A stretch of DNA of 64,000 nt from Callorhinchus milii (Eukaryota), in NCBI RefSeq assembly GCF_018977255.1, contig NW_024704762.1, forward strand, positions 6,262,001-6,326,000, given 5' to 3'. The notes beneath the pieces are model-generated. The model was not told the DNA's origin, made no database searches, and worked only from the letters and a program-made list of their open reading frames with translations. Shown in pieces: positions 19,497-58,300 of this stretch (the first letter of the stretch is position 1; the number at the start of each line of letters is the position of its first letter). A program made the translations under genes and the position numbers.

Positions 19497-22513
<3,017 letters not shown>

Positions 22514-24994: not shown

Positions 24995-27900
24995 CTACAA
25001 ATTATTTTTGTTCCATTTAACCAATCCATCTGCATACTGGAACTCCTGATTGTTCTCGTACTCCAACATGTCCAATGCCACCTCACAGCTCTCTTTCACC
25101 ACACGCTCTCCGTCCTGCAGATATTCTTTCAACACCTGAATGCACGGCTCCTTGGCAATTGATCCCAGAGCCTCTGCACATTCGTGTCGGACCATGGGAC
25201 TTTCATCCAGTTTTTTCAACGCTTCGATAAGTTGGGGAACGCTGGCTTCGTGTTGCATCTGACCGAAGACGTAGCCAATTTCGTGTCGGAACAAAGCACT
25301 GCCACACTGTAAGCCTGCGGAGAGGTAGGAAGCACAGAGCTGTCGATAACTTTGTTCAGAAACATTTGACAACTGTATGTGACTGGTCATCGACTGTATG
25401 GTACTCACAGGGTTTTAGAGTGAGTCAGTTATGTTATGTCATGTTATGTTATGGAACGATTATCGACAGAATGGTAACAGGCTGCTGGGCATTACTGACC
25501 CGTACTCTCCATATAAAAATAATGCTAAAAAATATTTTGCTTTAGCCACATCACACAGTGGTGGAAAATATAGAAACTTCCTGCATTAGCAACTGTTACA
25601 GGTGACGGCAGTAGGTATTTGAGCAAAAGGGCAGGAATTTGGTAAAGGGTTTCATTTCTTCGAATATTGCAGAAGTAGAGGGGAAAGTTACTCCCTTATA
25701 TATACATATTATAGTAATATAATAATCCTTGCATTTGATATAGTGCCTTATCACGTTCTTCAATATGTCTCCAAGTGCTCCACAGAATATACTGTAAAGT
25801 GAATTGACTGTACATTGTGTGGGCAGAGCAAAGCTCCCCTGATCAGCCAACAATGTGACAGCACCCTCTACTGTACCTATATGACATTTCCATTTCATTT
25901 CCAAATGATATTAGTCAATATTCGTATATCCATACAGAACTCATTTAAACTTGTGGCTAAATTAATCTCTCTGCATTGCTGGTCACAGAATATCTTCTGT
26001 TTCAAATGGGGTTTTCTCAAATCTTCTCCCTGAAGCTGTCTCCTCTTTCATGCCAAAATGTACTTTTTTTCCCCCTTCCCCAATATCGAATCTGATCTTA
26101 ACTACCGCCCCTGGATTTACTTTATTTTTCAAACCTTGGTGGTAGCTTTCATTCTGGAACTATTGTAGAAAATGTACAATATATAACTGGATGTGGAGAA
26201 AAAAAAAACACATAAAAATAGTTCATCAACTTCACTTTATGAAATGTCATTCCCCCCCCACCCCCACCCACCCCAATTTATTGGACTTGATATAATCACG
26301 AAACAAAAAAAAACTGACAGGACTTACCTTCGCCTAAAGCCAGAACTGCTTCTTCACTTCCAATATTTCGCAGAGCAAAGATAGCTCTGTATCGGTCAAA
26401 CAAAGGAACAGATTCGTCCAGGAGAATGTCCCTCAACTTTTTAATATCTTTTTCTTGGGCTGGGGGAGCAGGGTCCACAGAGTGATATGGGTTTCCAGTT
26501 TGCTCTTTGTTGTTCTGAAGCCATTCAATGCGCTTTACTGCCAGCTGGCAAGTCTCAGCGACCTGTAAATCTCAATACAAAAGCAGTGTTGAAGGGAGCG
26601 TCACATAAGATGACGAGATATCAGAAAGCTTTAAAATTGCATGAGCATTGATCTTCACTACAGAGCAGGAAACAATACAGTACCTTTGATTGTAAAACTC
26701 TTTCTCTCTGTCCCCCTAAAGCCTTATTAAAATATAATGCACTACTAGGAAATAGTGAGGACATTTTTTAATCCCTCACTCTCTATAGTCCTAAAAAGCG
26801 CTGACATTTTGGCTCTGATACCCAAGTTCCAAAAGTTGCTCCCTCGTGTCAACCAGGAGTCATTTGGGAATTATAGGTTTGAGATGCGTGCAGAGCTAAC
26901 GGGAGATCCGAATCCAAGTTCTTTGGGAAATTTGTAGCTTGGAATACCAGCCATTTGGCAACACTAGTTATCTCCAGAGGCAAGTTTGTCTCAGGATGTG
27001 GAAATGACTTTATAGACAACCCCATTGCCTGTATTATCTTACCTCTACTACTGGATCATGTGAGTATTGCTGCAATAATTCAAGGACTTCAGGTTTTCCT
27101 ATGGCTCCCAAAGCTTCACCTGAAATAAAAACACATTGGAGCTTCACAAAAAAAAACTAAAAGTCGAAACAATAAATTGTTGGGCCAGGACACCAGGAGA
27201 GAGAAACTCCCTTCTCGTTTCCAATACTACCTCTGGATCTTTAACGTCCACCTGGAAAGGCAGACAGAACAGGACCTTGGTTTACCGTCTCACCTGAACG
27301 GAGGCAACTTCGACAACGCAGCGCACTGTAGTGGAGCGAGCGTCAGTCAGCCTGGACTGTATGCGAGCTCAAAGTCTGGATGGAGAGCGCAACGTGAAAA
27401 GCTCGATGGTTTGAGCTGGTCAGACGCCAGCAGTACCCACCCCCCAACACCCAACGCACACTCTGGCGTCCCAGAGACTTGGTTCCTCAAGCGCTCCGGG
27501 TCGCTACCCTGCGCGAGGGTCGGGCTACGAATGAAAAGTCATCGTCGCTGCTGTCGTCGTCGTCGTCCCTGCCAACCTGCGCCTCACACTTGCCGGGTAG
27601 CAATTGGGTAAGAAGCAGGACATGTCCCTCCTGGGGTGTGAGAGAGAGAGAGAGAGAGTGGGAGCGTGCATTCCCAATCCAATACACGTTACTTGGGATT
27701 GGCAGGTGTCGGTGGTGGTGGGGGGGCAGTGGTTGTGTGGGCGTGAGGGGGTGGTGTGGGGGGAGGGGTGCAGGGAATTCTCAGGCTGGGGGTTTGGAGA
27801 CTCTCTGAGCCAGCAATAGGTGATGGGGTTTCCAGGTGGGTCAGACACCCCTCAATCAGTCAATCAATCAATCAATCCACCAATCAATCAATACACCAAT

Positions 27901-28114
27901 CAATCAATCAATCCACCAATCAATCAATACACCAATTCATCAATCAATACACCAATCAATCAATACACCCATTCATCAATCAATACACCAATCAATCAAT
28001 ACACCAATTCATCAATCAATCCACCAATCAATCAATACACCAATTCATCAATCAATACACCAATCAATCAATACACCAATTCATCAATCAATACACCAAT
28101 TAATCAATCAATCC

Positions 28115-28149
<35 letters not shown>

Positions 28150-28497
28150 CACCAATCAATCAATACACCAATCAATACACCAATCAACCAGTGACTGACC
28201 GGCTTCATGCCTGACCATGGGCTCCTGGCCGGGGTCCTGCAGCACGTGGCTGAGCACGGGCAGGGCCCGCGGGTCCTGGAGCTGCCCCAGACAGTAGGCC
28301 AACTCGTGCTTGAGCAGCGCCGACCCGTCCCCGAAGCCCCTGGAGATCCAGTCGATGGCCTCGGGCCCCCCGACGTTGCGTAGGGTGAAAAGCGCCCGGA
28401 AGCGCTCCCGCAGCGGCTTGGACGCGTCCAGCAGGGTCGTGCCGACCGACTCCAGCGCCTCGGCGCCCAACACGGCTCCCTGCGCGGCGGCCGGCAT
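24995..28497 (-). CDS. DOHH: Deoxyhypusine hydroxylase, 4 coding exons: 28200-28497, 27043-27119, 26328-26562, 24995-25314; 309 aa
   Basis: HEAT-repeat protein with four His-Glu iron-binding motifs (KHELAY, RHEAGEALG, RHEIGY, RHECAEALG). GT-AG boundaries; exon lengths 298+77+235+320=930 nt in frame. Confidence 0.97.
27175..27420 (-). mobile_element. DeuSINE-type fragment in DOHH intron 1
   Basis: ggccaggacaccaggagagagaaactccc...ggatctttaacgtccacctg core. Confidence 0.65.
27853..28190. repeat. (ATCA)n-derived compound microsatellite/minisatellite beside the DOHH exon 1 donor
   Basis: Repeating caatcaatcaatacac / caattcatcaatcaat units. Confidence 0.95.
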
Positions 28498-28613
28498 CGC
28501 TCGCGGAGCAGTCCTCCAAGCGCCACCAGGTAGTCCTCCAAGAGCCCGGCGTCCTCCGCGCTCGGCCCGACACCTCGCTCCGTTGAGATGGGTGGGCGGG
28601 ATTGGGCTGGTTT

Positions 28614-28753
28614 CACGCCCGTTGGGGGCGGGTTTTGTCGTACTGTGCGTAAAAATACGCCCATTGGGCGGGTTTTGTCGTACTGTGCGTAAAAATACGC
28701 CCAATTGGGCGGGTTTTGTTGTACGGTGCTTGAAAACACGCCCAATTGGGCGG
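28614..28753. repeat. About 3.4 copies of a 40-41 bp tandem repeat upstream of DOHH
   Basis: Unit cgcccaattgggcgggttttgtcgtactgtgcgtaaaaata, starting at 28616, 28658, 28698 and 28739. Confidence 0.9.
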
Positions 28754-29807
28754 ATGCCTAAATTTTTGCACAATTTGAACCTGTAAATCTCCCCCCCCCA
28801 CCCCACCCACCCCCACCATTTAATGAGTTTTTCATACACCGTTTGAAAACTACTAATCTAAATTACCCACTCTGCTACCCATAGTAGGCGACACAATAAT
28901 ATTGGGCTACTTTTGGGCTACTGTTTGGGTTTTCTTTGTGCTACAAGTGTCTTCATTTATTGGCAACCTGGGGAGGGGGGAAGAGAAGGAATGGGTCCCC
29001 CTCCCTCCCCTGAATGATTATTCAAGTTAGTTTGTCATTTTTAACCTTGTACGATGAGGTCTTTGGATTGTACAATTTGGAACTGTGTGTGATTGTGATT
29101 TCCTGGTTGGTTGAGTGACATCTCTGTCCTGCATTTTTTTCCCAAGTACTGTTTATCTTATTTGCCCTATTATTCCTCTTCGTGTTGCCTTTTCAAATGT
29201 ATTCTGTTTGTAATGTACATGCTAAGTGCGCTTTCCTTTGGTGGTATACTTGCGTATTTGTGTTTTGCGGTTATTTTTTCTATCATCATTCCTTCCAAAT
29301 GTTTTTCGCTGTTCATTTCATTCATTTCCATCACCAAATTACTGCATAATTTTCAGACTACTATTTAATAAACTATACTAGAATCCTTCTAAGGAGGGTG
29401 ACTGACAAGCATACTGCCCCTTTATCTCAGAACTGCTGTTCAACTGCATTTGCAGTGAAACTCCCTATAATGTAGAGGAAGATAAAAGTACATTCTTGTA
29501 TCCTTTTAATTATTTTAGGATGCCACCTCATTGTTAACCACAGAAACAGATGAAGGTCATTTGAAGCCCACCGTACCAGTTTGTTAGATCTTTTAATGCC
29601 CCCTTACCGTCATGAAGTATAAAGAGACGTCTCTTTTTTTAAATTAAAAAACAAACAATATGATACAGGCTTTATTGCATCAGTATACAATACCAAGGCA
29701 TTCCTAGTCAGAATAGAGATAAAACCACACTGAAAAATTATCATACATTATTTACAACTTCTGCAAATGCAACATCGAATACAACCTAGAACGCCATAGA
29801 TAGAGAC

Positions 29808-32800
29808 CTAACTATCTTCCGGACCCATAAAGTAAGCAGCCAATACCTGTCGGATTTCTTCTGCTTTGCTATCAATCTGTCTGTCAGATTCTGTTTGGTT
29901 TGGCTGAGGAAATTCCTCCTGCCCAAGCACTCCCAGCCATTCATTATTAAAACCATCATTATGCTTTTCACAAACGTTGTGAAGAATGCAGCAGGCGGTG
30001 ATCATTGTCGGAATCAGTTCAAGGCTACAGTCATTCCTTTTGAGAAGACATTGCCAACGTGCTTTGAGTCTGCTAAAGGCATTGTCTATCACAGTGTGAG
30101 CCTGGTTTAACCTGCAGTTAAACACAACTTGATGCTGTGAGAGCTTTCCTGTTTCCAAATACGGCTTCAGTAACCATTCCTGCAGTGGGTATGAAGAGCT
30201 GCCTATCAACAGGTATCTCACGGGAGTTCCCCTGATGATTCTGGGGCAAGCGGGAAACAACTTTCCTTCAGTAGCCCTCATCCACACATCAGAATTCTTC
30301 AGAATTTTTGTGTCAAGAGTACTCCCAGAAAATCCAGCACAGACGTCCCAGAAATTACCAGTGCCATCAACCACACCTTGCAAGACAACCGAATGCCATC
30401 CCTTTTTGTTTAAATAATCTTTGTGATACTGTGGCGGGGCAATAATGGGTATATGGCAACTATCAATAGTACCAACACATTGGGGAATGTCCCACTTGAT
30501 GCCATACGTCCGATTCATAGTCTCAAATTCCTGATTGGTAGGCAGTCTTAGATACAGAGGCTTTAACAGAGACACAATGGCGTAGCAGACTTCTCTCACA
30601 CATTTACACACAGTTGATCGCCCTATTCCAAACAGATGACTTATTGTTCTATATTCAACATTCGTAGCTAGTCGCCAAAAGGCCACTGCAACTCGCTTTT
30701 CCAGTGGCAGTGCTGGTCGAAGGTGAGTGTTTCGGCGAGACACCATGGGTTTCAGCTTATTACACACGTGAAAAAATGTTTCCTTAGACATTCGGAAATT
30801 TTCCAACCAGTCGTTCGGCTGAAATTCCTTCATGACCACGCGTTCCCACCAGTCCGAACTTCTAGGCTTGCACCAAATTCTTGTTCGACAGTTACACCTA
30901 CTACCTCCACGGGCCATGACCATCTATAAACAATACGAAAAACATTTCGAAGTTCAGGAACTGGAGGCTGGTTTGATGGAGAACTTCACTTTAAGTACAC
31001 AGTGTAAGCTGGATGTTCACATTGATTTAATTACTCGATTTAAAGTTGCACAGAGTAAAATCAAATTAAGACATTTAACACTTGATTGTCAAAGCTTGCT
31101 TAATAGTACAATACTGCATTTCTAAACTCTCCGCTCTCACCTCCAAAATAGCCAGCTCTAAAAACCCAATTAATTTCCCCGCCATTCACCTCAAAGCACT
31201 CCTCTTGCTCCGTTATAATAATAAATTCGCCCACAAAATACACGGTCAATTTACTTCATAGTATGTCATGTGAAGCACTTTGAGACATCTCAAAGGTGAT
31301 AAGGCTATCAGTCACCCCTATGTTTTCAATGCCTGTGTTTAAAATACGTTCTGTAAAGTTTGTGTGTTCACTAAAAGCATAAGCCAGTGTGAGTGTAGTT
31401 AGTAATTACCGATTGCGCTCGGCGAAGCTCAAACATGCTGAAGTTTGGTAGAACTGGTCCATGCGTGTTATTAACTATATTGAGTTGTCCTTTAATTTTT
31501 TTTGTGTATTTAATGGTTTTGATACTTATGGTGCCATCAAGTCTGACTCAGGCATTGACTGCAACAATTTGGTGGGCAACTGACGGCCTATAATTGGCAT
31601 AAGTGGCGAGGAAGGCGCCCGGTTTCCTTATTGGGTCACTTAAACGATGATTTGGATTGGACCATAAGAAAGGCAACAATTACACCAAAAAATAATTGGT
31701 GCAATACAATTACCATTGAGGGCCTTAATTTGGGGTGGGGCTCAAAGCCCATAAAAGAACGAGCGCCAATGCTCTGGGTTGCTATTTTTCCTACCTGATT
31801 ACGGCGAAAAGGTACGTGTTCTGACTATTGATGAGTAGAGGTTGGTTCTTCGTGCACTTTACATTAACTTCATTACAAGTGGCTTCTAACCTGTTTAGTT
31901 TAAGTGTGATTAATGTTTGTTATCTTAAAGTTGCATTTATTGATACTTATTGTGCCGTTAAAGATTTAATACCGAGGGTTGTGCATTTCATCGAACCTAC
32001 AATAAAATTACGTTGAGTTTACTTAGCTGTGCTTTCTCAAACTTTCTGTATAAATCAAAGGAGGACACTCAACACAGGTTGAGTCTACATCACAGTCTGT
32101 TTAGAATAAAAGACTGATGATGGAATTGTCCCAATTTGCTTTAATTTAAATAGTACCTGTCGATGTGGAAGAACTCATTAGTCAACTTACACCTAGTTAT
32201 AGGGACTTGCATTCATTAGTGAGGATTGACCACAGAGGCCACGCAGTACACTCTGCAAGGGGAAGGAAGCCATATCATGGATCGACATATATGGGTAACC
32301 AGATAAGAACCATCTCAAGGCACTATCTCAAATATAAGGATTATTATTAGTATATTATGTAAAGCGCTTTGGGACGCCTCAACGACGTGATAAGGCGCTA
32401 CATCAAATGCAAGGATTACTATTACTATTGTAAGTAATAATCCTTCCATTCGAATCAATGCCTTTCACGTCTCAAAGCACTTCATGTGGCTCGCGGTGAA
32501 GTGCGGCAGCCGCGTGTTAACGCAGGCGAACGCAGCGGCCAAAGTTCACGCACGGTGGGCGACATCCCGCAAACAACCGCGGAGCGAACAGCCTATGTTA
32601 TTTGAAATACGACAAGAGATTTTTGTACCCGGGACACCGACCGAACGGTGATGAGCTGGTTTGGTTTGGGGTTTGGGGTGGGGGGGGGGGGAGAAGGCAA
32701 GGGAACTCCTTCAATAATAATCCTTGCATTTGATGTTGCGCCTTATCAGGTCTTCAAGGCGTCTCAAAGCGCTTCACGGGACTGACCTACCGGTACGTTG

Positions 32801-33294
32801 ACGCGGACTATATTTTGAGGGCAAAAGCAGACAAATGTCTGCAACAGGATAGGGAAAAGCTGGAAATACAGTACAAGGATGGTTTGGGGAAGGTTCCCCC
32901 CCCAACCCCCTCTGTCTTAGGAAGGTCATTCATCTCCTGGCTTTAGAGTTAGTGTCGAGTCGGGGTCGGAGGGAGGAAGGCAGAAGAAGAGAAAGAGGAG
33001 TCAATGAAGGAGAGGGCAGGAACAGTTCAGCCCTTTGTGCGTGACACGAAAAAAAAGGAAAGGGGGGGGGGGAGAGAATTAAAAAAAAGACCTTCCCCCT
33101 CCTCCAAAAAAAAAAATTCTTTTGTTTCCTACCAATATCATCTTCCTCTGTCGCTGCTGGAAGTACTGCCTCATCCTCAGCCGCCTCTGAGCGTCGTTCC
33201 TCCTCTCGAGGTTGGCGCCCTCCACCTCGGCCCGGCGCTTCATCAGCAAGTAGAGGAACAAGAAGAGCAGAGGCAACGCCGCCTCGTCCGCCAT
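29808..33294 (-). CDS. PIF/Harbinger transposase-derived (HARBI1-like, DDE_Tnp_4-type) protein, 2 exons: 33133-33294 and 29808-30923; 425 aa
   Basis: 371-aa ORF with Harbinger motifs ENFRMSKETF, HTH region (YRTISHLFGIGRSTV), GTIDSCHIPI, Y.NKKGWHSVVLQGVVD, YPLQEWLLKPY, AF.RLKARW.CL, ACCILHNVCE. It is preceded directly by an acceptor (tttatag|ATG at 30923) that joins in phase 0 to a 54-codon exon ending TTG|gtagga. Minus-strand AATAAA at 29671-29676. Confidence 0.9.
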
Positions 33295-33501
33295 ACTTGT
33301 TTCTCTCTCTCTCTCTCCTCTCTCTTTCTCCTCCCCTCTCTCTCTCTCTCTCTCTCTCTCCTCTCCCCGTTTGTTTTGGGAGCCGCTTCGAAACCCCGGG
33401 AAGAGCTCCAGCGGCGGCGTCGACCACAGCGAACCCGCCCCCTTCCCTTCCTTGTCACCCCCCCCCCCCCCCTCTTCCCTCCTTTCCCTCTCCTGTTGTC
33501 T

Positions 33502-34110
33502 GAGGAGAGGGGGAAGGGGGGAGAGGGAGAGGGGGGGGGGAGAGAGAGGTAGAGAGACGGACTTGGAAGTGAGATTGATGGAGAGACCGAAAAGAAGGAA
33601 AGGGCAGAGAGAGAGAGAGAGAGAGAGAGGGGTTGAGAAAGGAAGGGGAAGAGAGGAAGGGGGGAGATGGAGAGAGAGAGAGTGAGAGGAGGAGAGAGAT
33701 AGAGGGAAGGGGAGAGAGGGAGGAAGATACGGGAAGGAGGGGGGAGAGAAGACGATCGGAGGAAGGCAGAGAGGGGGAGAGGAAGAAGAGGAAGGGAGGG
33801 AGAGGGAAGAAGAGAGAGGGAGGAAGAAGGGGGGAGAGAGAGAGGGAGGAAGAGGAGGAGGGAGAGTGGGAAGAAGAAAGAGGAGAGGGGTGAAGAAGAG
33901 GAGAGAGGGAGGAAGAAGAGGAAGGAAGATGGAGAGAGAGAGAGAGCGAGAGGAGCAGAGAGATAGAGGGAAGGGGAGAGAGGGAGGAAGGTACAGGAGG
34001 AGGGGGGGGAGAGAAGAAGATCAGAGGAAAGCAGGGAGAGGAAGAAGAGGAGAGGGAGGAAGGAGGGAGTGAGGAGGAGGAAGAAGAGGAGAGTGGGGGG
34101 AGGAGGAAGT
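33502..34110. repeat. About 600 bp polypurine (GA-rich) low-complexity tract
   Basis: Almost only G and A on the + strand. Confidence 0.9.
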
Positions 34111-34129
34111 CTTCAATGGCCTTTTTTCC

Positions 34130-34767
34130 AACGGTCGCTCCAAATCGGGTCCGTCTTCAAATCACACCGGGGGTGAGGGGGGGTCGGGGACCCCGAGCTG
34201 CTGCGCGGACCCGTGGCCTCAATCATTGATCCTTATTACTTGATGATGATTCATAATAATATAAATATAGACACGTTAAAAATAGCCAAAGCTTATTTCA
34301 CGTCAGACGCCCGAGTTCTGAACTCTTTTATTGAGGTGTAATGAAAGCCTTTGGGTTGTGTTGTGCTGCAGGTGAGGAGGGAGGGGGCGGGGCGGGGGGG
34401 GGAGAGCGCGGAGCCGGTCGTCACGGCGACGGTCGCCACGGCAACAGCCGGTCGCCAGGGCGACGACGGACGGCGCCCTTTTTTATTTTGTCCGTTGAGA
34501 TTCAAAACGCCCGCCGACGTCACAAAGGTAACGGTCGCCGGCCCAGCCTGCACCGCGGCGGGTCGCGCGGCCGCCATGTTCTTCTGAGGAGACATAGAAG
34601 CCCGGGGGAGGAAAGCCTTTCGACTCGACATTATGTGGGAAAAAAATACCTAATTTCTACACGCACTCACACGCGTGTATATATATATTTAACACAGATA
34701 TATATATCGTTCGGAAACGACGCCCTCACTCTCCTCCCCGACTGCCTGACAACTCGCACCGCCGAAG
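34130..34767 (+). promoter_or_regulatory. CpG-island promoter and probable non-coding first exon of FZR1 (donor AAG|gtacgc at 34768)
   Basis: CpG-dense stretch with GC boxes (34384-34399), three X-box-like palindromes (34417-34464), a CRE-like GACGTCA (34516), a YY1-like GCCGCCATGTT (34570-34580) and a splice donor; next acceptor at 36984. TSS not determinable. Confidence 0.65.
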
Positions 34768-35172
34768 GTACGCTCGAATTCCTGCCACTCTCCTCCAGCC
34801 TTGTTTTGTGTTCCTTTCTCTCCCTCTCTCCTTCCCTCCCTCCCTCCTTCCTTTTGGGGGGAGGGGGGGTTAACCGGCTCCAGGGAGTCCCGGGCATCCC
34901 TCCTGTCCTTTTCCGAAAGGGATTCGAGTCTTTTGTCTTGAGCTCGAGCGCCTGCAAAGAGGGGTGTTTTTGTTTGTTGCAATGGAACCGGTGTGAGGGG
35001 GTGTGTGGGGGGGGTTTCGCGGTGTGTTTGTGGCCTCACCGGTCAGACGTGTTGCTTTGGGGTTAGAATCGATCATCTTCAAGTCGATAACAGCGTCTCG
35101 AGATGTCTCGGCGCTTCACGGGACTCCGCTCTGCTGCAAAAGTGCAGTGACTTTGTGTATTTTTTTGTGCGC

Positions 35173-35725
35173 AATAATAATAATAATCATCATCATCATC
35201 CTCGCATTTGATGCGATAGCCCTCGTCCCGTCTTCGAGACGGCTCATAAAAGGGCTGCTGGGCAGAGTATACTGTAAAGTGAATTGACTGTATATTTTCT
35301 GGGTGAAACGTGGCAGCCCATTGCGCACAGCTTTGTCCCACAAACAGTCGTGGATTGAAGTGACCACTGTATTATTATTTTTTTTGAAGGAATTATTATT
35401 ACCCCCCGGAAAATCAATCCACCTATCGACTAACAACCGAGTGCCTACTTACTGCTAGATAAACAGAGGCGTGTGGAGTAAGAAAACTTGCCCAGCATTT
35501 CTAGCAGCCGGGAAATGGCCACAAAGTGAATGACCCAATTTTATCTGGGGGATTGTTGGCCAGGACACGGGGAGAAACTCCCTTCAATCTTCAAAGAGTG
35601 CCATGGGATCTTTAATGCATCCACCTGAACAAGCAGAGGGGATCTCAGTTTAATGAATCACCTTAAGGATGGCATCTCTGTCAATGCAGTGCTCCCCCAG
35701 CACAGCATTCAAATGTCAGTTTTGA
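35173..35725 (-). mobile_element. Adjacent SINE copies (1497-type at 35173-35515, DeuSINE-type at 35516-35725) in FZR1 intron 1
   Basis: Reverse-complement matches to both SINE bodies seen elsewhere in the window. Confidence 0.75.
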
Positions 35726-37030
35726 CTTGAGTTTAAACGGGTTATCCGTTGACATTTGTCTCCAGTCCTCATTTGACCCGCAGCCTTTTGACAGTCATTT
35801 GCTCAACAATTCAAGCATAAGAGTTCCTCAGTGTTGATGACTAGGAAGTTGTTAATTAATAATTAGCCTAGATAAAGGCCATCCCTGTTTAATTCAAAAC
35901 ACAGCTAGGGTTAGGGTTATCTGAATATGCTTCTCTTGACCAGAAATTACAAAGGCGATTTAACAAGACATAATCTAATTGTTGTCTTCTCAATTTGTGG
36001 ATTCAGCAAATATTTTAAATTAAACTGTAGGGCTTTTGCTGAAACAGTTGAGAGCTGATGAGTAAGTGGAAAGCAAATACAGTACTTTAAAACTTTACTG
36101 TGTTATGTGATGAAAATGGTATTAAGAGCAAGATTTTGGAGGAAGAATTTGTTTGGAACTTGACTTTTCAGAGATAATTCCAGTGTATACAACAACAACA
36201 ACAACAACAAGATTACATTTGTATAGTGCCTTTCACATCGGGAGGACGTCCCAAGGCGCTGGACAGCAAACAGCATATCGAACCCGAGCTTGGGTCAGGG
36301 TATAAAACGTCATTCACATGAATTGTCAATATGGATTCTGCAGAATGATAGGTAATAAGTCATTGCCATAAAGCTGCTGCTGACAATTCATAAGCGTATG
36401 TATATAAAGGATATATGGTGAGCAGCTGTTTGACATAATTTATATCCCATGTGTTAAGGTTAGTTGTGGAATGTAAAGTTGTTTTCGCAACTGTTCAGTG
36501 TATGGAGAGGATGGTGCTTGCACTGATTCAATACTTGTATGCTATCTTGTCAGCATGCACATTTAAATATTGTTTCACACATCATAATCTTTGCAATTGA
36601 TCTTGGGCCTTATCGCATTGTCGAGTTGTCTCAAAGCGTTTCAAAAGCTATACTGTAAAGTTGATTCACTGGATTTTCTGCATGATCTTATGGGCAAGCC
36701 AGTTTTTGCACAGCAATGTCCCACAAATAGCTATGGAGTGTGTGACCAATTTTATTTGGGTGAATGTTGGTCAGGACCAGAAGAGAGGAACTCCCGATTG
36801 GTGACATTAGTAGGTAAAAGTGACATTTCAGTATTAATAAAAAAAGAATTTGCATCTATATAGCACCTTTCACATAAAAACTAAACTTAGCACTTTTACA
36901 TATTAACTAAGCAGCCACGTGGCAGTTTAATACAAGAGAAGTTTGGATGTTAACTGGAGTGTCAAATTGTTTATCTTCTTTTAGAACTGCCACTCGATTG
37001 AACTTGGTTATAGTTCAAGTCATCATAATT

Positions 37031-40000: not shown

Positions 40001-43000
40001 CCAGGCACAAAAAAGTAGGTCACGACCTGTATTGTGAAACTTGTACACCAGTAAGAGTTGTGTGCCTCTGATGTTAACTACACAAATATATTCTGTCATA
40101 GCACTTGGCAGTAGAATTACTATTCAGAACCATAATTATGGTTTCCTTTGGTTGTAGAGTCCAATTGGTAAAAATTAGAATGCCCTGTGTTATTGGTTAT
40201 AATCGCTACCAGGGTTAGCCACAAAGATATGTATTTCTTAGAGAAAGTAGCTTGTGAAACCTACCTATGCTTTGCCGTCTTAAACCATCTTATGCTATTT
40301 TGAACGTGACTTTAGGAAAAATCACAAACCAAATAAAATGCAATGATTCCTTTTATAAAAATGCGGTTAACATCTCAGGTCCAAAGAAATGGATCTTTAA
40401 TTTGATCTTTTCTAAGTCTTTTATTTTTGAACTTCATGGTTCTCAAATTGAGGAATATGTGCGTAGAGGAGAACGTTTCTCTTAAAATGCTTTCCATGCA
40501 ATATTAGCAACGGTTATTATTCGACTTGTACGCAGAAAAAAAACTCTGCGTGCAGTTCACCACCACAGTGCTACCAAGCCTCAGAAAAGCTTCCCTATTA
40601 CTCTGCAATAGTGAGTTCTCTTTTCTTGCAACTTGTGGCCTTTCAGGTGTAGAATAACGGACAGTTTTGTACTGTGGTCCACAAGCTCACTAGGAAGTGG
40701 GTTGATTCTGCTAAAAACTGACTTCACATCACATCTTTACAGCCAGAAAATATTGCGAACACTTTAATTCTGTTAGCCTTCACCAAGGTTCATACATTTA
40801 GATTTCAGAAGTTAAAAAGTTTAGTGTTGCAACAAATTATCACCTATACTTCATTATTTTCATCATTCTGTGCTTTTTAAAGGCTGTTAATGTTATCTTA
40901 AGCAATATAATAATGCAATTTCTATATTTAAACTATTTCACTAAGTAACTTTGTTTGAAAGATTAAGTTTGCAATAAACCATAGAAACTATATTAAAGTT
41001 GCAGAGGGAATTATTTGAAACTAAGAGAGATGTTATTGAAATAATTGTTCTAGGATCATTATTAGGGTTAAAGGCGCTATACAAATGTAAAGTTGTTGTT
41101 GTATTAATTTAACTTATTTCTTGTACAGTCAAAAATTATTGCGATCACCGAGAAAACCCACTCGAAAAATATCAAAGATTCCATTTAAAGTTCTCGACGC
41201 GCCAGAATTGCAGGATGATTTTTACTTGAATCTGGTTGACTGGTCTTCCTTAAATGTATTGAGTGTTGGACTTGGTACCTGTGTATACCTCTGGAGCGCT
41301 TGTACTAGCCAGGTAAGATTCAACAGAAACATCTGCAGTCTATATAAATATTAGGTCTGTTACAATATGCAGCTTAATTGTTTTGGTTTGCCCACAAAAC
41401 ACAATCGCTCCACTTTACAGTATATCCTGTGAATCGCTTTGAGATGTCTTCCTGAAATGTAGCAAATGTAAGGATTATTATTTATTATTGTAAATTGAAG
41501 TTATGAGGTGTAGTGATAGTGTGTTTTTAAGAGAGCCAGTAAACTTTTTTTTTAGAAAATGCAATACACGTGTTTTATTCAAATTGATATTCAATTTTTT
41601 TTCTTTTGTAAGTTGTGTAAATTACCCAAAATGAAAATAGCAGTTTTTACAATAAATATTTATCTCCTAATTAAATATAATTATTTTCATGTATGCCTTG
41701 TTTTCATTTTTTCTGCCTCACAGGTGACTCGACTGTGTGATCTATCTATAGATGGAGATTCTGTTACATCGGTCGGCTGGTCAGAAAGGGTAAATATCAT
41801 TTTTGGCATAAATAAAACTCAGCATAATCATCTGCTTACGATTTTTGTTTTGCAAATCACTTTTTAATGTGGGGAAGTTTGCATTGATCAGGATACAGTT
41901 CCTTTTACTCATCAAACATTTTAAACAATTATGTTCATAATACACTCACGGTAAATTCAACTATGTTAGTATGTCATGCTGTTTTGTGTATTGCTGCATT
42001 ATTCATAACTGACATAAATTGGTAATGATATCAGTGAAAGACAAGACTCATTACTTGAAGTAAGACTAGGTATGTTTACTCCCATTGGAAGATGTTCTGT
42101 TTTGAAGAGTGAAGGTAGCTAGTATCATTTAAATTACTGATGCTTTGGGTTATTTGTTTAACTTGAATCTAGGGAAATTTAGTAGCTGTTGGAACACACA
42201 AAGGGTATGTTCAGATCTGGGATGCAGCTGCAGGGAAGAAACTGTCTACACTCGAGGGTCACTCAGCAAGAGTGGGTAAGTTTCTCATCATCACAAGCTT
42301 AATTTTCCTAGTTCTGGATCGTAGGAAACGTCCTTGGGACATTCTCCTGAGGTGAAAGGCGCTATACAAATATAATTTGTTGTTGTTTGTGTAGATTCTA
42401 GGATTGTAATTCAACCAAGAGCACTCACTGACTATTCCAACTGTATTGTTGAAATGTATTCATCAGAGAAAATTGTAATTAAATGGTGACTATTACAATG
42501 GATGTTGAAACAAAAACAACTCTAATTTCTCATTGTTTATTGGACTTTGCAGTACACTACCCATTTCAGTGTGATATTGGGACAAAAAGAATGCTCAGTG
42601 TCATTCTACAAGCTCCTTAGATGAGACAAATTTATGGGCGTGTTTTGTTTTATTTAAAAAAAACTAAATGCACCATGGGTTATATTGAAAATCAATTTCT
42701 TATGGGTTCAGTAATTGAGAAATACTAATATGTGGTCCATAGGTTTTTCCATTGAAGTTTTGGTAGTTATATTTTCATGCTTTTTCAGAACAGTTAAATA
42801 TGTATAGTTTCAAGAATGCAGGCATTTGACATGGATGGATTATTCCCTTAGGTGCTCTTGCATGGAACGCTGATCAGTTATCGTCAGGAAGTCGAGACCG
42901 ACTTATTCTCCAGCGAGATATCCGAACCCCACCACTACAATCTGAGCGGCGACTTCAAGGTCACAGGCAAGAGGTCTGTGGCTTGAAATGGTCCACAGAC

Positions 43001-45949
43001 CATCAGCTTCTCGCTTCTGGTGGAAATGACAACAAGGTGAGATTCATAGGAAATAAAGAATCCGGGTAAAATTAAGCCAAACACTGACATCAGTTTTGAT
43101 GTTCACATCATCCGAAGTGGGAGACCGGCACTCCATTATTTAGAATCACATGAACATCAGCCGCCTTTGTTGATCTCGTCCTGGTATAATTAAAAATTAG
43201 AACCCATTAAAATGGGTGCGGCAGCTCCATCAGCGCCTCAAAGTCCTGACTGGTAACAACAACTTGTATTTATACAGCGCCCATCATGCAGGGTGGCGTG
43301 AAACTCTGAAAACTCCCTTTTTTTTAATCCCTCGCGCCTTGCCCCTTCCTTCCCCATTTTCGGGCCATGCGAACGGTCACCTCCCCTCCCCCCAGCTCGG
43401 AGTCATGCTCCGCCAATGTCAAGCGAGCTAGGATGCTACTCTGCGTGAGGGGAGCTGTATAAATGCAAGCTGTTGTTGTTGGCGTCCCGGAACACTCACC
43501 CTGGGAAGCCGAAGCAGCTGGCTAACTTGCTCGGACGTGACTTCATGCGACTGCACAGTGAATGGGAATGCACTGACTGGCTGTCACTCAGTTTATAGCA
43601 GTGGTTGGGATTTTATGGACCCCTAAATAACATTATTACTGGGTTCTACTATAATATATATTTAATCGCTGACAGTTTGGGAAATTGGTTTCTTTGAGAG
43701 TTTGTTTTTGTCTTGGGTTGGGTTTTTGTTTGTAAAACTGGTGTTAATTCAAAATGGGCTGTATTTTATTATGAAATTGACTCAAGTGTGATTTTTCTTT
43801 TTTTCCAAGCTTCTGGTGTGGAACAACTCTAGTTCAGGTCCAGTGCAACAGTACACAGAACACCTCGCAGCTGTGAAAGCCATTGCCTGGTCTCCCCATC
43901 AACATGGGCTTCTTGCGTCGGGAGGTGGAACTGCTGACCGCTGCATCCGTTTCTGGAACACTCTCACCTCTCAGCCATTACAGTGTATAGATACAGGTTC
44001 ACAAGTGTGTAACCTTGCCTGGTCCAAACATGCAAACGAGCTGGTGAGTCCAAAGCAGTTTTTCCTTGGTGCATTTATGAGCTGAATTGCACAGCTCTAC
44101 AATCTGACTGTCACCTTGAGGATATAGTTTTTTCCCTGTGTTCGCCTCACTTACCTATCTTTGCTTCACAACCATTTGAAGCAATCTAGAACTCTGCAGG
44201 GGCTTAAATTGCTTGGACCACATTAAACTTTTGTACTACATAGTGGATCTTGGACCTACATTTTTTTGATAGTCATGAAATAGATCATGTTCTTCTCTGC
44301 AGTAATGAAAATAATGTGGCAATAGTTGCATTGTTATCATTACTGGCAGAGCAGCATGTAATAATAGTGGCAGTAGTTGCATTGAAGGCAACATTAATGC
44401 TTACCAACACAAATGATGTCTTAACCATGTTATCTTTGTACTTGTAGGTGAGCACTCATGGATATTCACAAAATCAGATCCTGGTGTGGAAATATCCATC
44501 ACTAACACAAGTAGCCAAATTGACTGGACATTCCTATAGAGTTTTATACTTGGTGAGTACCGCATGCTTTAATTTTCCTTCTGATTTTTCTCTCCTGAAG
44601 ACTGCCTGCTTGAGGTGGTCTATGGTGTTTTGAGCTAAGACGTATAGGTACACCTCTCACCATGAAGTGGCATCAGTCTTGTCCTCCCTGGACATCCACA
44701 TTAGTGTCAATTGGCAGCATGGTAATGGCCCTAGTATAGAAGTTGGGCTGCTCTGCTCAATGAATAGTAGGGCTTGTGCATCTCAAGCAATCAGTTGGTG
44801 ACTGAGAATGGCTGAAGCATAGGTGGGTGGGGTAAATGTCTGGCATTTGCTATCTGCAGGGTAATATGATGATGTAAGATGTGTGGAGAACATCGGCGGG
44901 GAAGGAAACCGATTTTATAATATAATTTTTTTTAATAAAAGTACTACCTTGTTAGTGTATGGTTATAAATTCTCTTGAATCCTCTTTTTGACCCAAAGGC
45001 CATGTCACCAGATGGAGAAGCTATAGTGACTGGAGCTGGCGATGAAACACTTCGATTCTGGAATGTGTTTAGTAAAACCCGTTCAACTAAGGTATGTGGT
45101 GCTCTAGGTAATGAGCTTCACTGTACGAAAAGTTGGGTTTCAACTGAAGAATGAATTTATCCCGTATTTTTAAACAAATGTGATTATACCATATTGCTTC
45201 ACAAGAGTTGCCTGTCTATTTTAATTATCCTAAAACTGGTAGGCTTTTCACTGAGTGCAAATACATGTATAACATGTTTGCACACAGTTGTCCACATTGA
45301 TTCCTGAACCCATCAGATTGTTTTAGAAGACAAGCTGAAGGGAGGTGCTTATTTTTAATATTTCAAGTGAAATCATCGAGTTAATAGTGCAGCAGAAACA
45401 AAAGCAGGTTATGTGATTAACTTCTTGGTTAGCTAAAATGTGATTTTGACTGGAAGAGGAAATTAAGTGGGCGGTAGGGATGTAGAAACTTGTTTTATTC
45501 TCGTTGCTACTAAATTAGATAAAGGCAGTGACGTCAAAATTGTAAAGTTAGGTGCTTCTAAGTTTTCAAATTGCCCAAACCTGTCTGATACTTGCTGACG
45601 GTAACAATATACTGACTTGATAGTTATTGCACAGTCAATTCACTTTATAATATATTCTGTGACGAGCTTTGAGACGTCTTGAAGAGGTGACAAGACACTA
45701 TATGAAATGCAAGGATTATTATTAAATGAAAATTGATATTCCTACCAATTTCATCCGAAATTCCTGCATCAGCTGATGTGCAAATTGTCATATTTTGGAA
45801 GGCACAAGCAGGACATATGCTAATAGTGCAGTAGTAAGAGTGAACAATTAGTTAAAGAGGAATTTTCAGAGTTCAAGAGATGCATTTACTTTTGCATTAA
45901 ATTACAGGAATCCATATCTGTGCTGAATCTCTTCACAAGGATTCGATAA
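37031..45949 (+). CDS. FZR1: Fizzy-related protein 1 (Cdh1, APC/C coactivator), 13 coding exons: 37031-37099, 37906-38031, 38364-38427, 38769-38896, 39711-39793, 41129-41312, 41724-41789, 42173-42275, 42852-43036, 43810-44043, 44448-44552, 44999-45091, 45908-45949; 493 aa
   Basis: N-terminus [14 protein letters not shown]-box [29 protein letters not shown]40 repeats, C-terminal IR tail (LFTRIR*). All introns GT-AG; total 1482 nt in frame. Confidence 0.98.
38983..39202. mobile_element. Inverted-repeat hairpin element, probably derived from Penelope-like terminal repeats, in an FZR1 intron
   Basis: Arms 39009-39082 and 39129-39202; the outer 36 bp are a perfect inverted repeat. The spacer contains CTGATGA...GACCCAAAAC. 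Confidence 0.7.
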
Positions 45950-54700: not shown

Positions 54701-55302
54701 CATGTTAGATCATCTGCCTTCGTGTTGCTTGACTTTTTAATGATCTGTATTATCGGAAACCACCTGGGAGACGATAAGCCAAATTGGAAATCCCCAGCAG
54801 CTCATTTATAAAGTGCAAAACCTTCCGTTTGTTTCCTGATTCTGACTTGACTACGAAAATGAAACTAGCTTTGGCTTACTTTCAAGAAACCCTGCCATCA
54901 AAATATTACAGCTATGGTACTACAAAATAAATCGTTGCTATCAAAAAGGTCAAATCTTCCCAATGAGGGTCGACTACTGCAGGTCAAACATTTTTGTAGC
55001 CTTTCTCAAAAGCCAAAGCAAATCTCTTTGTTAAGCTGAACGGCAGAAATTGTGCCTTTGAGGTGTCTCTCTGATTGGGCTGGATGAAATTTTGCAAATA
55101 GAGAAAAATTAAGTATTTTTGACTGTTTGATTTTTTTTCCCCACATTTTCTACAGATCTCGAAGCTTACTGAGCGTGGGAACCTTGCAGTGCAAACGATA
55201 TTCAAGGTGTAAAGACAAATCAAAGTGTGTCTCGGGTGCATCTGGCTTGTTGCGAAGACTTAATTTTTCCTGCTTCTCATGGACAGTCACATAGGTTCAA
55301 AT

Positions 55303-58300
55303 ATGGCAGTGGCCTTGAAGCAGGTTTTCAACAAAGACAAGACATTTCGTCCCAAGCGCAAATTTGAGCAAGGCACCCAGAGGTTTGAGTTGCACAAGAA
55401 GGCACAGGCATCGCTGAACGCAGGTCTAGATTTGAAACTAGCAGTGCAACTCCCTTCAAATGAGGATCTCAATGACTGGGTAGCGGTCCATGTGGTGGAC
55501 TTCTTCAACCGCATCAATCTGATCTACGGGACTGTGTCTGAATTCTGCACTGCCTCCACCTGCCCTATAATGTCAGGAGGACCCAAGTACGAATACAGAT
55601 GGCAAGACGAAAGCAAGTACAGAAAACCCACCGCACTATCTGCTCCAAAGTACATGAGTCTCCTTATGGATTGGATTGAAACCCAAGTGAACAATGAAAA
55701 CATATTCCCAACTAATGTTGGTGAGTCGTAAAACCTTCTTTGAACATCTTCTTGCACTTTGTTGTTCAAATTGTTGTTTTCTTTGTAACAAAACCTCTCG
55801 ATAAAGCAATTATTGTAGCAGAGAGTTTATGAATGACTGCATTACTGCCTTGGGGCTGACCCTGTTATAAAGTGCCTGGTATAGCATTGCACTATAATGG
55901 TATGGCCTACACTTGGATTCTATTAAATTACTATACTTATCTAGCCAACTTGAAAGTGATTCCACTCAAATGTATTTGGGGGGTGGGAAAGGTTAAAGAG
56001 TCTGGATAGGAATGTAAACATACTAATTTAGAATTGCTGCAATAATAGTTAACCAGAAGGTAGTACTAAATTTCATTGGTATTTGTTTCTTTATAATAGT
56101 TTCAATATTGATCAGTTTGGGCGTAAGCCGTCTCGGCTTCATGTAAATAAAAGAAAATCACCTGTCTTACATGAATGGTAGCATTATCTATTGTTCTGAT
56201 CTGAAGTAACTTGGCCCATTAATTTTTTTATATATCATTTCTCTCAGGTACTCCTTTTCCAAAGAACTTCCAGCAAGTTTGCAAGAAGATCCTCTCCCGG
56301 CTTTTCCGTGTTTTTGTCCACGTCTACATCCACCACTTCGACCAAATTGGCAATATGGGAGCAGAGGCACACGTTAATACCTGTTATAAGCATTTTTACT
56401 ATTTTGTGACGGGATTCAACTTGATAGACAACAAAGAGTTAGAACCACTGGTATGTTACAGCAATATTTACTCGAACATTTAATTGATATAATTTAGTTT
56501 ATCCATAGAACGATAGTTTTTTAAATGTATGTGGAATAAGTACAACACTGCTGTGGCAATTGGCTGCCGCGTTTCGCCCACAAATATACGGTCAATTCAC
56601 TTTACAGTCTATTCTGTGAAGCACTTTGAGACGGCGAGAAGAGGTGAAAAAGCACTATATCAAATGCAAGGATTATTATTTTTATTATTAATTTTGTAAA
56701 GAGGTTGAAACCGTTGCAGTTCTGCCCCTCGGCTTAATTTAGGTTACAGGAAATGTGATGGAGAAACATTCAAGGCAGTTGAACTTCTTCTAGCATCGGT
56801 ATTGTACCCTACCTAGTGTTATAAAGCTCCAATGCTCTCTCTAAGTGCTATCTTACTTTGGAAGTGCACAATCTGTAACTATACTATTGGGTACTTTTGA
56901 CTCAATTGAATTGGACAAAATCTGATAAATTCTCGTTCATACCAATCTGTTAAACTAACATTTAGTGGGTAAATGTTTGCAGTGCAGTCGTTTGAGAATT
57001 ACATGCAGCGAAGATTCTAGTTGCACTAAAATTCTAGTAGCTGAACAACATATGGAATTTGAAGACTATTGTGGGCTTGGCGAAGAGGACGGTGTAGTTG
57101 GAAATCTCAGTCCTTTAGTACTCAATACTGTTTGTACCCATACAAATATATTTTTCTTATGGCTACCTTCCATTGTAAGCATTTAACAGTGAACTTTCTG
57201 AGGGATATTCAATGAGCTTCTCATCACAAGTATTCCTTGCAGCCTTTTAAGGCTTAGCTTATTTTGGGTTAATGTCCAATATATTCTCCTGAAGCCAGAT
57301 GAAGAATACTGATTTGTTCAGACATTTTTGTTTTGTTTTTGAGATACTAGATTTTGGCGTCACTTTATGACATAACCTCTTTATCTTGCCTCTATCTGTC
57401 TGTCTAACCTAACCTTAATTCTCTTATCTCATGTCAGCTTTTCTAAATCGTATATGTACCCGTCTGTTTTCTTTCTTGCAGTCTGATTCTGTCTTTCTGG
57501 CGATAGCTGCATAGGTCTTTGATCGTATTATCCGTTGCTCTGTTCTGCTCCTCTTATCTGGTGACCTCTCTTCCTCCGTGGTTTATGACAGTCTTACTCT
57601 CTGAAGCACTGTACATATTCTTGTGATGATCCTGCTATGTTCTGAGGTATATATTTTCATTATAATTATAATAAGAAGAATCCTTGCACTTATACAACAA
57701 CAACTTGCATTTATATAGCGCCCCTCATGCAGGGTAGCATCCCAGAGTAGCACCTTTCGCGTCATGAGGACATTTCAAAGCACTTCGCAGGATTTACAGT
57801 CAAATTTGCAATTTGTCTATCAAACCGTTGAGTGGAACAAAGTTTGTTGCTAAACTCTGGATAGGTTGAAATCTTTTGTGTGGTGAGTTTTCTCAGTCCT
57901 TAGTTGGGCCACACGGCAGCATACTGCCCATCTTGGCAAACCAGCACTAGAAACAATATTAGCATTCCACCGATCTTACCTTCTTTCAATGAATCATGCA
58001 GTGCTATTGACAGGATCAAAACAGGAACCTGTGAGGTGCTGGAGGTGAAACTATATCCCAGCATGCAATTACAAACTATCAAAAGAGCAAAGTACAGGGT
58101 TGAAGGATGTATGTCTGAATGTGCTGGGTTCAAATATACAGTGAATTGAATTGCTAATTCATACGCTGAATTGCTGCTTACCTCTTATTGGGTTAAAATG
58201 AGTATCAAAGCTCTGTCTCTGAATATCCCTGTTGCATATGATCGCATTAACCACAAAGCAATATCATTCAGGAAACAAAAAGCATCCCATACTGTTCTTA

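Follow-up and report, generated by a model that had tools for sequence, protein, structure and literature searches.

A candidate Harbinger transposase-derived host gene other than HARBI1 lies between DOHH and FZR1 in the elephant shark

The window analyzed here, a 64,000-nt stretch of the elephant shark Callorhinchus milii genome (assembly GCF_018977255.1, contig NW_024704762.1, positions 6,262,001 to 6,326,000, numbered from its first letter), contains a minus-strand gene of 425 codons in two exons that spans 33294 to 29808 in both the open reading frame (ORF) list and the sequence, and that the original prediction described as a candidate domesticated Harbinger transposase gene between DOHH and FZR1. 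The two-exon model with its canonical splice sites holds at all coordinates, both neighbors are identified by PDB matches, and the polyadenylation signal that had been noticed is present, with an RNA-like contig ending just beyond it (Table 1). Searched separately, the two exons are 100% identical to the C. milii protein XP_007896889.1 (UniProt V9KTY0, 425 aa), exon 1 corresponding to residues 1 to 54 (54/54) and exon 2 to residues 55 to 425 (371/371), and this record was used for whole-protein work. The first codon of exon 2 is itself an ATG, and exon 2 equals the 371-aa "isoform X2" annotated in other species; 371-aa isoforms are on record for Stegostoma, Chiloscyllium, Rhincodon, and gar. 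The gene is already in RefSeq and UniProt for C. milii under similarity names only, and it is annotated but undescribed in the searched literature, which contains no description of it and nothing under the names zgc:113227 or si:ch211-133l5.8; among the matches listed for HARBI1-like and ALP1-like proteins, all are non-vertebrate (plants and one insect genome).

Exon 2 is present in 14 public runs, 10 of them being small contig sets with a guessed RNA label, and the contigs of four runs (X1, X3, X6, and X11), which carry no expression-level information, were aligned to positions 29600 to 33500. The predicted 33133/30923 junction, at which 2209 nt are skipped, is found exactly in X1, X3, and X6 (a single contig per run), which come from three studies. 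The X3 contig joins 29666-30923 to 33133-33272, and the X1 contig joins 29823-30923 to 33133-33290 and continues for 27 nt more. The joint is absent from the large DNA-like run X11, in which a contig spans 29600 to 31095 without a break at the acceptor and so behaves as genomic DNA would. X3 also carries an exonic variant, 33181 C>G, at a third codon position that leaves Arg38 unchanged. These contigs show the gene to be transcribed and spliced as predicted in the elephant shark.

Everything needed for mobility has been lost at this locus, including the terminal repeats, the multiple copies, and the Myb-like partner gene. The many near-identical copies that would argue against a host gene are not borne out, with X11 depth over exon 2 of 8 to 12, like that of the unique 3' flank and as for a single-copy sequence (depth is in the thousands over the intron repeats), and with each exon matching only itself within the window by blastn. 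The reported lack of terminal inverted repeats (TIRs) was confirmed in both a general and a targeted search. Of the 209 inverted pairs in 27000 to 36000, the 25 longest do not flank the gene, falling instead within the intron, within GA/CT low complexity, or at 28.66 to 28.75 kb, and comparison of 28900-29810 with 33295-34600 yields a single 12-nt C/T-rich match only. A Myb/SANT ORF, also said to be missing, was not found among the 10 flanking or large ORFs of the window scanned with Pfam, and there is no further long ORF near the gene. Autonomous Harbingers, such as the reconstructed Harbinger3_DR, have in common with this gene a DDE_Tnp_4 core, and the gene also has a candidate helix-turn-helix (HTH), but it has no TIRs, no target site duplication, and no second ORF, is single copy, and has apparently fixed synteny. 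The full-length DDE_Tnp_4 domain is what an autonomous Harbinger element, still active or active until recently, would carry if it lay between two genes by chance, but such an element would not be expected to have single-copy depth without TIRs or a Myb-like ORF, two spliced exons around an intron crowded with older repeats, or orthology and apparent synteny over >400 million years (see below), and this reading, to which next to no probability attaches, is refuted for practical purposes.

The intron fragments described in the original prediction as decayed SINEs are indeed interspersed repeats by copy number (Table 1), but the assignment to the SINE class stands less firmly: no tRNA-like head is present in the intron repeats and no tRNAs were found, so that the label reflects copy number and short length only. 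The 32355-32580 fragment forms an inverted pair with 32713-32777. A single family of short interspersed repeats recurs across the window and reaches a depth of >100,000 in the DNA-like run.

Exon 2 matches DDE_Tnp_4 (PF13359; 6.4e-28, 97.8 bits against a cutoff of 24.8) and Plant_tran (PF04827; 3.1e-8, 33.9 bits against a cutoff of 22) in Pfam and contains an HTH_Tnp_4-like segment (Table 1), and exon 1 has no Pfam match. The protein can be placed, by descent, in the PIF/Harbinger transposase superfamily. An AlphaFold2 model built from an 84-row alignment (pLDDT 81.2, pTM 0.75) consists of one helix at residues 6 to 59, approximately coextensive with exon 1, a disordered linker at 60 to 77, helices in the HTH region, and an alpha/beta core. 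Alignment of the model to solved folds with VIA-align gives piggyBac (Z 9.2 over 242 residues), Tn4430 TnpA (8.4), Tn5 (8.3), and ISCth4 (7.8), which are generic DDE-transposase matches for the core, together with generic coiled coils for the N-terminal helix. Foldseek returns nothing at E <= 1e-3, no PDB chain is related by sequence, and the ESM Atlas gives DDE_Tnp_4 clusters only, in which the plant clusters are more distant look-alikes. The exon 1 helix is hydrophobic and then basic. A transmembrane anchor at residues 5 to 18 was considered and rejected, because the 14-residue hydrophobic run is shorter and interrupted in zebrafish, turtle, and birds, and the AlphaFold2 helix is continuous from 6 to 59.

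A protein search with exon 2 gave 451 proteins at E <= 1e-3 among 1,247 candidates, and the best 120 of the 451 were used. When 1.84 billion representatives were scored, 19,517 passed E <= 1e-3 as relatives, 838 of them at E <= 1e-30. In a FastTree phylogeny, 102 of 121 rows (101 of the best 120 homologues plus the window sequence) form one clade with a support of 100, and IQ-TREE recovers the same clade (27 of 48 chosen rows, SH-aLRT 100). It comprises, in order, the chondrichthyans; the coelacanth; caecilians and salamanders with a crocodilian, turtles, and birds; and sturgeon, bowfin, gar, and teleosts. The tree of these relatives follows the gnathostome species tree, as expected from vertical descent. 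Exon 2 identity to the elephant shark is 80 to 88% in sharks and rays, 66% in the coelacanth, 61 to 64% in sturgeon, bowfin, and gar, 57% in zebrafish, and 53 to 56% in turtle, gharial, and bird. Exon 1, identical at 38 to 43/54 residues in the six models from sharks and skates that retain it, is recognizable from sharks to teleosts, and is weaker in sauropsids and amphibians. In zebrafish the orthologue is XP_021324076.1; that of gar is named si:ch211-133l5.8. A second teleost copy is nested among the teleosts (IQ-TREE, SH-aLRT 97 to 99), compatible with retention after the teleost genome duplication. The nearest named proteins outside the clade are from fish, caecilian, sea urchin, Lingula, and sea spider, with 38 to 47% identity.

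Linkage to DOHH appears to extend to a bird. A 558-aa "deoxyhypusine hydroxylase" model of Tinamus guttatus, which emerged from a search with the turtle orthologue, has DDE_Tnp_4 at residues 3 to 138 and HEAT repeats at 275 to 345, and maps by tblastn onto exon 2, DOHH, and the next ORF past DOHH (Table 1). Two weaker matches are out of order (residues 269 to 358 to 25327-25058 and residues 393 to 417 to 28431-28357) and fall within the repeated HEAT motifs of DOHH. The model is evidently three neighboring bird genes fused by the gene predictor, and its colinear mapping implies that the gene, DOHH, and the next gene have the same order and strand in bird and chimaera; the long bird, quail, Danio aesculapii, Cirrhinus, Conger, and Cetorhinus forms of the protein contain no neighbor-gene domain. 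By these comparisons, the gene was fixed no later than the jawed-vertebrate common ancestor and has been kept by vertical inheritance for >400 million years, apparently next to DOHH.

That the gene might be a transcribed relic, a decaying copy or pseudogene with no protein function whose frame is open by chance or through recent insertion, would be in keeping with its transposase origin, with database names that are similarity names only, and with the lack of literature on it, but intact orthologues of 411 to 457 aa across jawed vertebrates in a species-tree topology, conservation of both exons, DOHH linkage common to a bird, and 36 invariant columns in 84 sequences make this a very improbable explanation. 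Conservation, topology, and DOHH linkage over such distances do not fit neutral decay. A gene that is transcribed, single copy, and part of a clade with species-tree topology agrees with the view first taken of it as an old host gene from a Harbinger transposase; the purifying selection proposed at the same time has indirect support from conservation only, in the invariant columns and the frames that are intact clade-wide.

The search with the turtle orthologue gave 81 proteins at E <= 1e-60 among 7,791 candidates. Turtle, gharial, and bird orthologues are 70 to 94% identical to the turtle query, and further holders among the 81 are coelacanth, holosteans, sturgeon, teleosts, caecilians, two salamanders, and sharks. 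The 81 matches include neither mammals nor frogs, and no mammal is among the 120 best exon 2 homologues; squamates provide only non-orthologous proteins of 40 to 41% identity that group elsewhere in the IQ-TREE phylogeny. This distribution indicates that mammals, frogs, and squamates have probably lost the gene, or at least lack it in their annotated proteomes. Retention in fishes and loss in mammals had been suggested, and fishes do hold the gene and no mammal matched, but it is not restricted to fishes, being present also in coelacanth, caecilians, salamanders, turtles, crocodilians, and birds. Human DOHH and FZR1 are presumably adjacent without such a gene.

The catalytic positions have a history of their own within this conserved protein. 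In the elephant shark they are D208, D258, and D334, the last in place of Glu (Table 1), and S296 (30200-30198) replaces the Asp of the "GD" motif. Over 84 orthologues the triad columns are D in 27/84, D in 20/84, and E in 49/84, and 36 other columns, such as H211, G254, and W246, are invariant. Coelacanth, sturgeon, bowfin, gar, Megalops, and three eels keep all of D-D-E. All 8 chondrichthyans have D and D followed by D (7/8) or H (Heterodontus, 1/8), with GS replacing GD; all tetrapod members have N at the second Asp, caecilians also having G at the first; and otophysans and euteleosts have lost the first two Asp. The best-conserved blocks are instead 76-105 (DWWERVV...FRMSKETF), 121-165 (the HTH), 241-255, and 346-375, with conservation scores of 0.82 to 0.87 for 76-105, 121-165, and 346-375 (0.82 to 0.86 for the HTH block). 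The ancestral protein, as read from this pattern, had an intact triad that was lost several times independently and kept in slowly evolving lineages. Because the triad is lost in many lineages while the rest is conserved, a function common to the whole clade cannot need the site.

The same pattern bears on the main rival explanation, that the protein is a still working host nuclease or recombinase, as proposed for HARBI1, in which D-D-D or D-D-E cuts DNA and the decayed forms are secondary. DDD transposases exist, piggyBac and mariner using such triads, and the predicted fold is that of a DDE transposase with piggyBac as its best match; D208 and D258 are kept in every chondrichthyan and a third Asp in all but one of them, and the full D-D-E persists in the coelacanth and in the ray-finned lineages named above. 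However, the His of Heterodontus at 334, the Ser for the "GD" Asp in all 8 chondrichthyans, the Asn in all tetrapod orthologues, and the loss of the first two Asp in most teleosts are hard to reconcile with cutting, as is the conservation of the rest of the protein despite triad loss, and a residual nuclease role in D-D-E or D-D-D lineages is unlikely.

HARBI1 is likewise a single-copy host gene from a PIF/Harbinger DDE transposase, and many members of the present clade are automatically named "putative nuclease HARBI1." It is reported from cartilaginous fishes to mammals (PMC9392472), whereas the present clade has no mammalian member among the matches listed, and the separation of the two that was originally proposed is sustained by this distribution, HARBI1 itself not having been aligned: with no mammal in the 81 turtle-query matches, mammalian HARBI1 lies outside the orthogroup. 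No bona fide HARBI1 is among the best 120 of 451 exon 2 matches or the best 150 of 19,517 relatives (to E ~1e-53). The present gene also differs from HARBI1 in adjoining DOHH and FZR1, in an extra N-terminal exon encoding a 54-residue helix, and in the decay of its triad in most lineages.

The suggested counterpart in zebrafish, zgc:113227, proved to belong to a different clade. This clade, found in teleosts and hagfishes, contains the nearest named relatives, with 43 to 46% identity (45 to 46% for zgc:113227) and the same domain layout, but it is separate from the present clade in both FastTree and IQ-TREE, as a sister group of 19 rows (18 plus hagfish) with canonical GAIDGSH, GSVHDAR, GDPAYP, and VVENAF motifs and D-D-E in 19/19; its Sardina member lacks an exon 1-like N terminus. 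zgc:113227 is therefore placed as a paralogue-level relative by these comparisons, and the zebrafish orthologue is the protein given above. The zgc:113227 clade may itself represent another, still more ancient Harbinger domestication, or else a transposon lineage of long standing.

More distant systems provide analogies. The transposase-derived ALP1, HDP1, and HHP1 of Arabidopsis are functional analogues, acting with Myb-like partners (ALP2, HDP2, and SANT1-4) in chromatin complexes (PMC9392472), and "ALP1-like" as a name, which is automatic, probably reflects similarity, not orthology, with 20/20 named nearest clusters being animal proteins. PIF/Harbinger transposases have been domesticated into host genes repeatedly (PMC9710019; Casola 2007), and the Drosophila PIF-like domesticated genes (DPLGs) are the same kind of domestication in independent insect events, with no orthology to the present gene. 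In Harbinger elements the Myb-like protein binds the N-terminal end of the transposase and imports it into the nucleus (PMC9392472, citing Sinzelle 2008), and HARBI1 binds NAIF1 (PMC9392472).

It is probable that this is an ancient host gene from a PIF/Harbinger transposase, distinct from HARBI1, whose product acts mainly without catalysis as a DNA- and protein-binding adaptor. A PIF/Harbinger transposase would have been captured as a host gene by the jawed-vertebrate ancestor, and the protein would have kept the folded transposase body, the helix-turn-helix, and the long N-terminal helix, with DNA cleavage no longer needed; the conserved N-terminal helix and HTH fit an adaptor role, which is its most likely function. 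Gene status, expression, age, and active-site decay are established above, and by analogy a Myb/SANT-like partner, NAIF1 or an MSANTD protein, may recruit the protein to chromatin or be recruited by it, a model that follows HARBI1-NAIF1 and plant ALP1-ALP2 as those are thought to work. Several points weigh against this reading. The adaptor role is drawn from analogy only; coelacanth, gar, bowfin, sturgeon, tarpon, and eels have a full triad; and the D-D-D of the elephant shark could still bind metal, so that a nuclease role in some lineages is conceivable. The HTH_Tnp_4 match scores 24.2 bits, below the 27-bit cutoff (25.8 bits in the Heterodontus orthologue), and the RNA label of the runs is a guess. 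Absence from mammals, frogs, and squamates is seen in protein collections, not genome searches, and synteny beyond the window comes from one chimeric bird model, in one species and on the DOHH side.

The accessible part of a survey of the family counts five Myb-like-derived vertebrate genes (NAIF1 and MSANTD1-4) and one transposase-derived gene, HARBI1, with MSANTD1-4 as its own additions to the already known HARBI1 and NAIF1, and mentions neither DOHH nor FZR1 (PMC9392472), although its supplements could list further Harbinger-like matches. The present gene would be a second vertebrate Harbinger transposase-derived gene of the same age as HARBI1, running from chimaeras to birds and apparently not to mammals, and it would add to the possible partners of the Myb-like proteins, some of these having links to neurodevelopment. 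Domesticated transposases are common, but the gene still closes an evident gap in a family that was surveyed recently. It constitutes a natural experiment in which one domesticated enzyme has kept its triad in slow lineages and lost it several times elsewhere, it explains misleading automatic names ("HARBI1" and "ALP1-like") in fish, reptile, and bird annotations, and it is testable in zebrafish and chicken.

Of the flanking genes, DOHH is immediately downstream on the same strand and FZR1 is upstream on the opposite strand, with its N-terminal coding exons read at ~37.05 and 38.4 kb in the ORF translations. A CpG-rich segment at 28.0 to 29.0 kb (observed/expected [o/e] CpG 0.80 to 0.93) is likely the DOHH promoter, and a CpG island at 34.0 to 35.5 kb (CpG o/e 0.95 to 0.97) is the putative FZR1 promoter. 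The gene appears to lie head-to-head with FZR1, 1 to 2 kb apart, and ~1 kb upstream of DOHH, and it may share a promoter with FZR1. A more extended scenario, which is tentative and somewhat doubtful, is that the protein is a second transposase-derived partner of NAIF1 or MSANTD proteins, forming a non-cutting chromatin complex in non-mammalian vertebrates through its N-terminal helix and HTH, that it is coregulated with FZR1 from the shared head-to-head promoter, and that its loss in mammals, frogs, and squamates reflects rewiring onto HARBI1.

Table 1. Features of the gene, its intron, and its neighbors in the window, with matches of the Tinamus guttatus model
Feature	Position	Strand	Details
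Coding exon 1	33133..33294	-	54 codons; ATG at 33294, GT donor 33132-33131
Intron	30924..33132	-	2209 nt, GT..AG
Coding exon 2	29808..30923	-	371 codons plus TAG; starts right after AG at 30925-30924
5' UTR and transcription-start region, extent uncertain	33295..33420	-	X1 contigs: 27 nt past 33290; 33373-33420
3' UTR	29666..29807	-	AATAAA at 29676-29671; X3 contig ends at 29666
DDE_Tnp_4 (RNase H-like transposase) domain	29976..30467	-	Exon 2 residues 153-316
HTH_Tnp_4-like helix-turn-helix	30588..30713	-	Exon 2 residues 71-112; 2.5e-5
Catalytic-position span	30084..30464	-	D208 30464-30462; D258 30314-30312; D334 for Glu 30086-30084
SINE-like repeat fragment, intron	31225..31310		13 blastn matches in window, self included; X11 depth 4,835
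SINE-like repeat fragment, intron	32355..32580		26 blastn matches, self included; X11 depth 177,623
SINE-like repeat fragment, intron, inverted relative to 32355-32580	32713..32820		28 blastn matches, self included; X11 depth 9,479-14,558
DOHH	25058..28407	-	Immediately downstream, same strand; PDB 4d4z 4.1e-57; HEAT_2 in ORF 28159-28857
FZR1 WD40 exons	41091..45151	+	Upstream, opposite strand; PDB 4ui9 1.2e-57 for 43792-44082
Small membrane-protein ORF, next gene past DOHH	21932-22513 (matched part 22160..22309)	-	194 aa, hydrophobic segment
Tinamus residues 1-171	30389-29877	-	Exon 2, 51%
Tinamus residues 250-322	28407-28189	-	DOHH, 73%
Tinamus residues 318-345	27123-27040	-	DOHH, 75%
Tinamus residues 343-424	26568-26326	-	DOHH, 63%
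Tinamus residues 435-484	22309-22160	-	Next ORF past DOHH, 64%

The 194-aa ORF past DOHH (21932-22513) has no Pfam match, and it may be SMIM24-like, SMIM24 being the human neighbor of DOHH. Zebrafish si:ch211-133l5.7 is reported to be intestine specific (PMC9600436), and its symbol comes from the same clone as that of the gar orthologue, si:ch211-133l5.8.

A GA/CT-rich low-complexity tract at 33300 to 34100 separates the 5' end of the gene from the CpG island at 34.0 to 35.5 kb. An Rfam scan of 29000 to 35500 gave 36 sub-threshold matches and none at the gathering score; all but one pile onto a G/C-run hairpin at ~33.43 to 33.57 kb on both strands, many of them to miRNA models, and they were taken as artifacts. 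Just upstream of the first DOHH coding exon, at 28600 to 28800, are overlapping palindromic or tandem units of ~47 nt with ATTGGGCGGG-like motifs, which give a repeated peptide in the ORF translations and may be a repeated promoter element. Elsewhere in the window, a 385-aa open frame on the plus strand at 20607 to 21761 with an RVT_1 match (9.3e-18) is a LINE-type retrotransposon fragment, and an exon at 55264 to 55728 on the plus strand belongs to a gene of the MOB kinase-activator family (Mob1_phocein, 6e-43).

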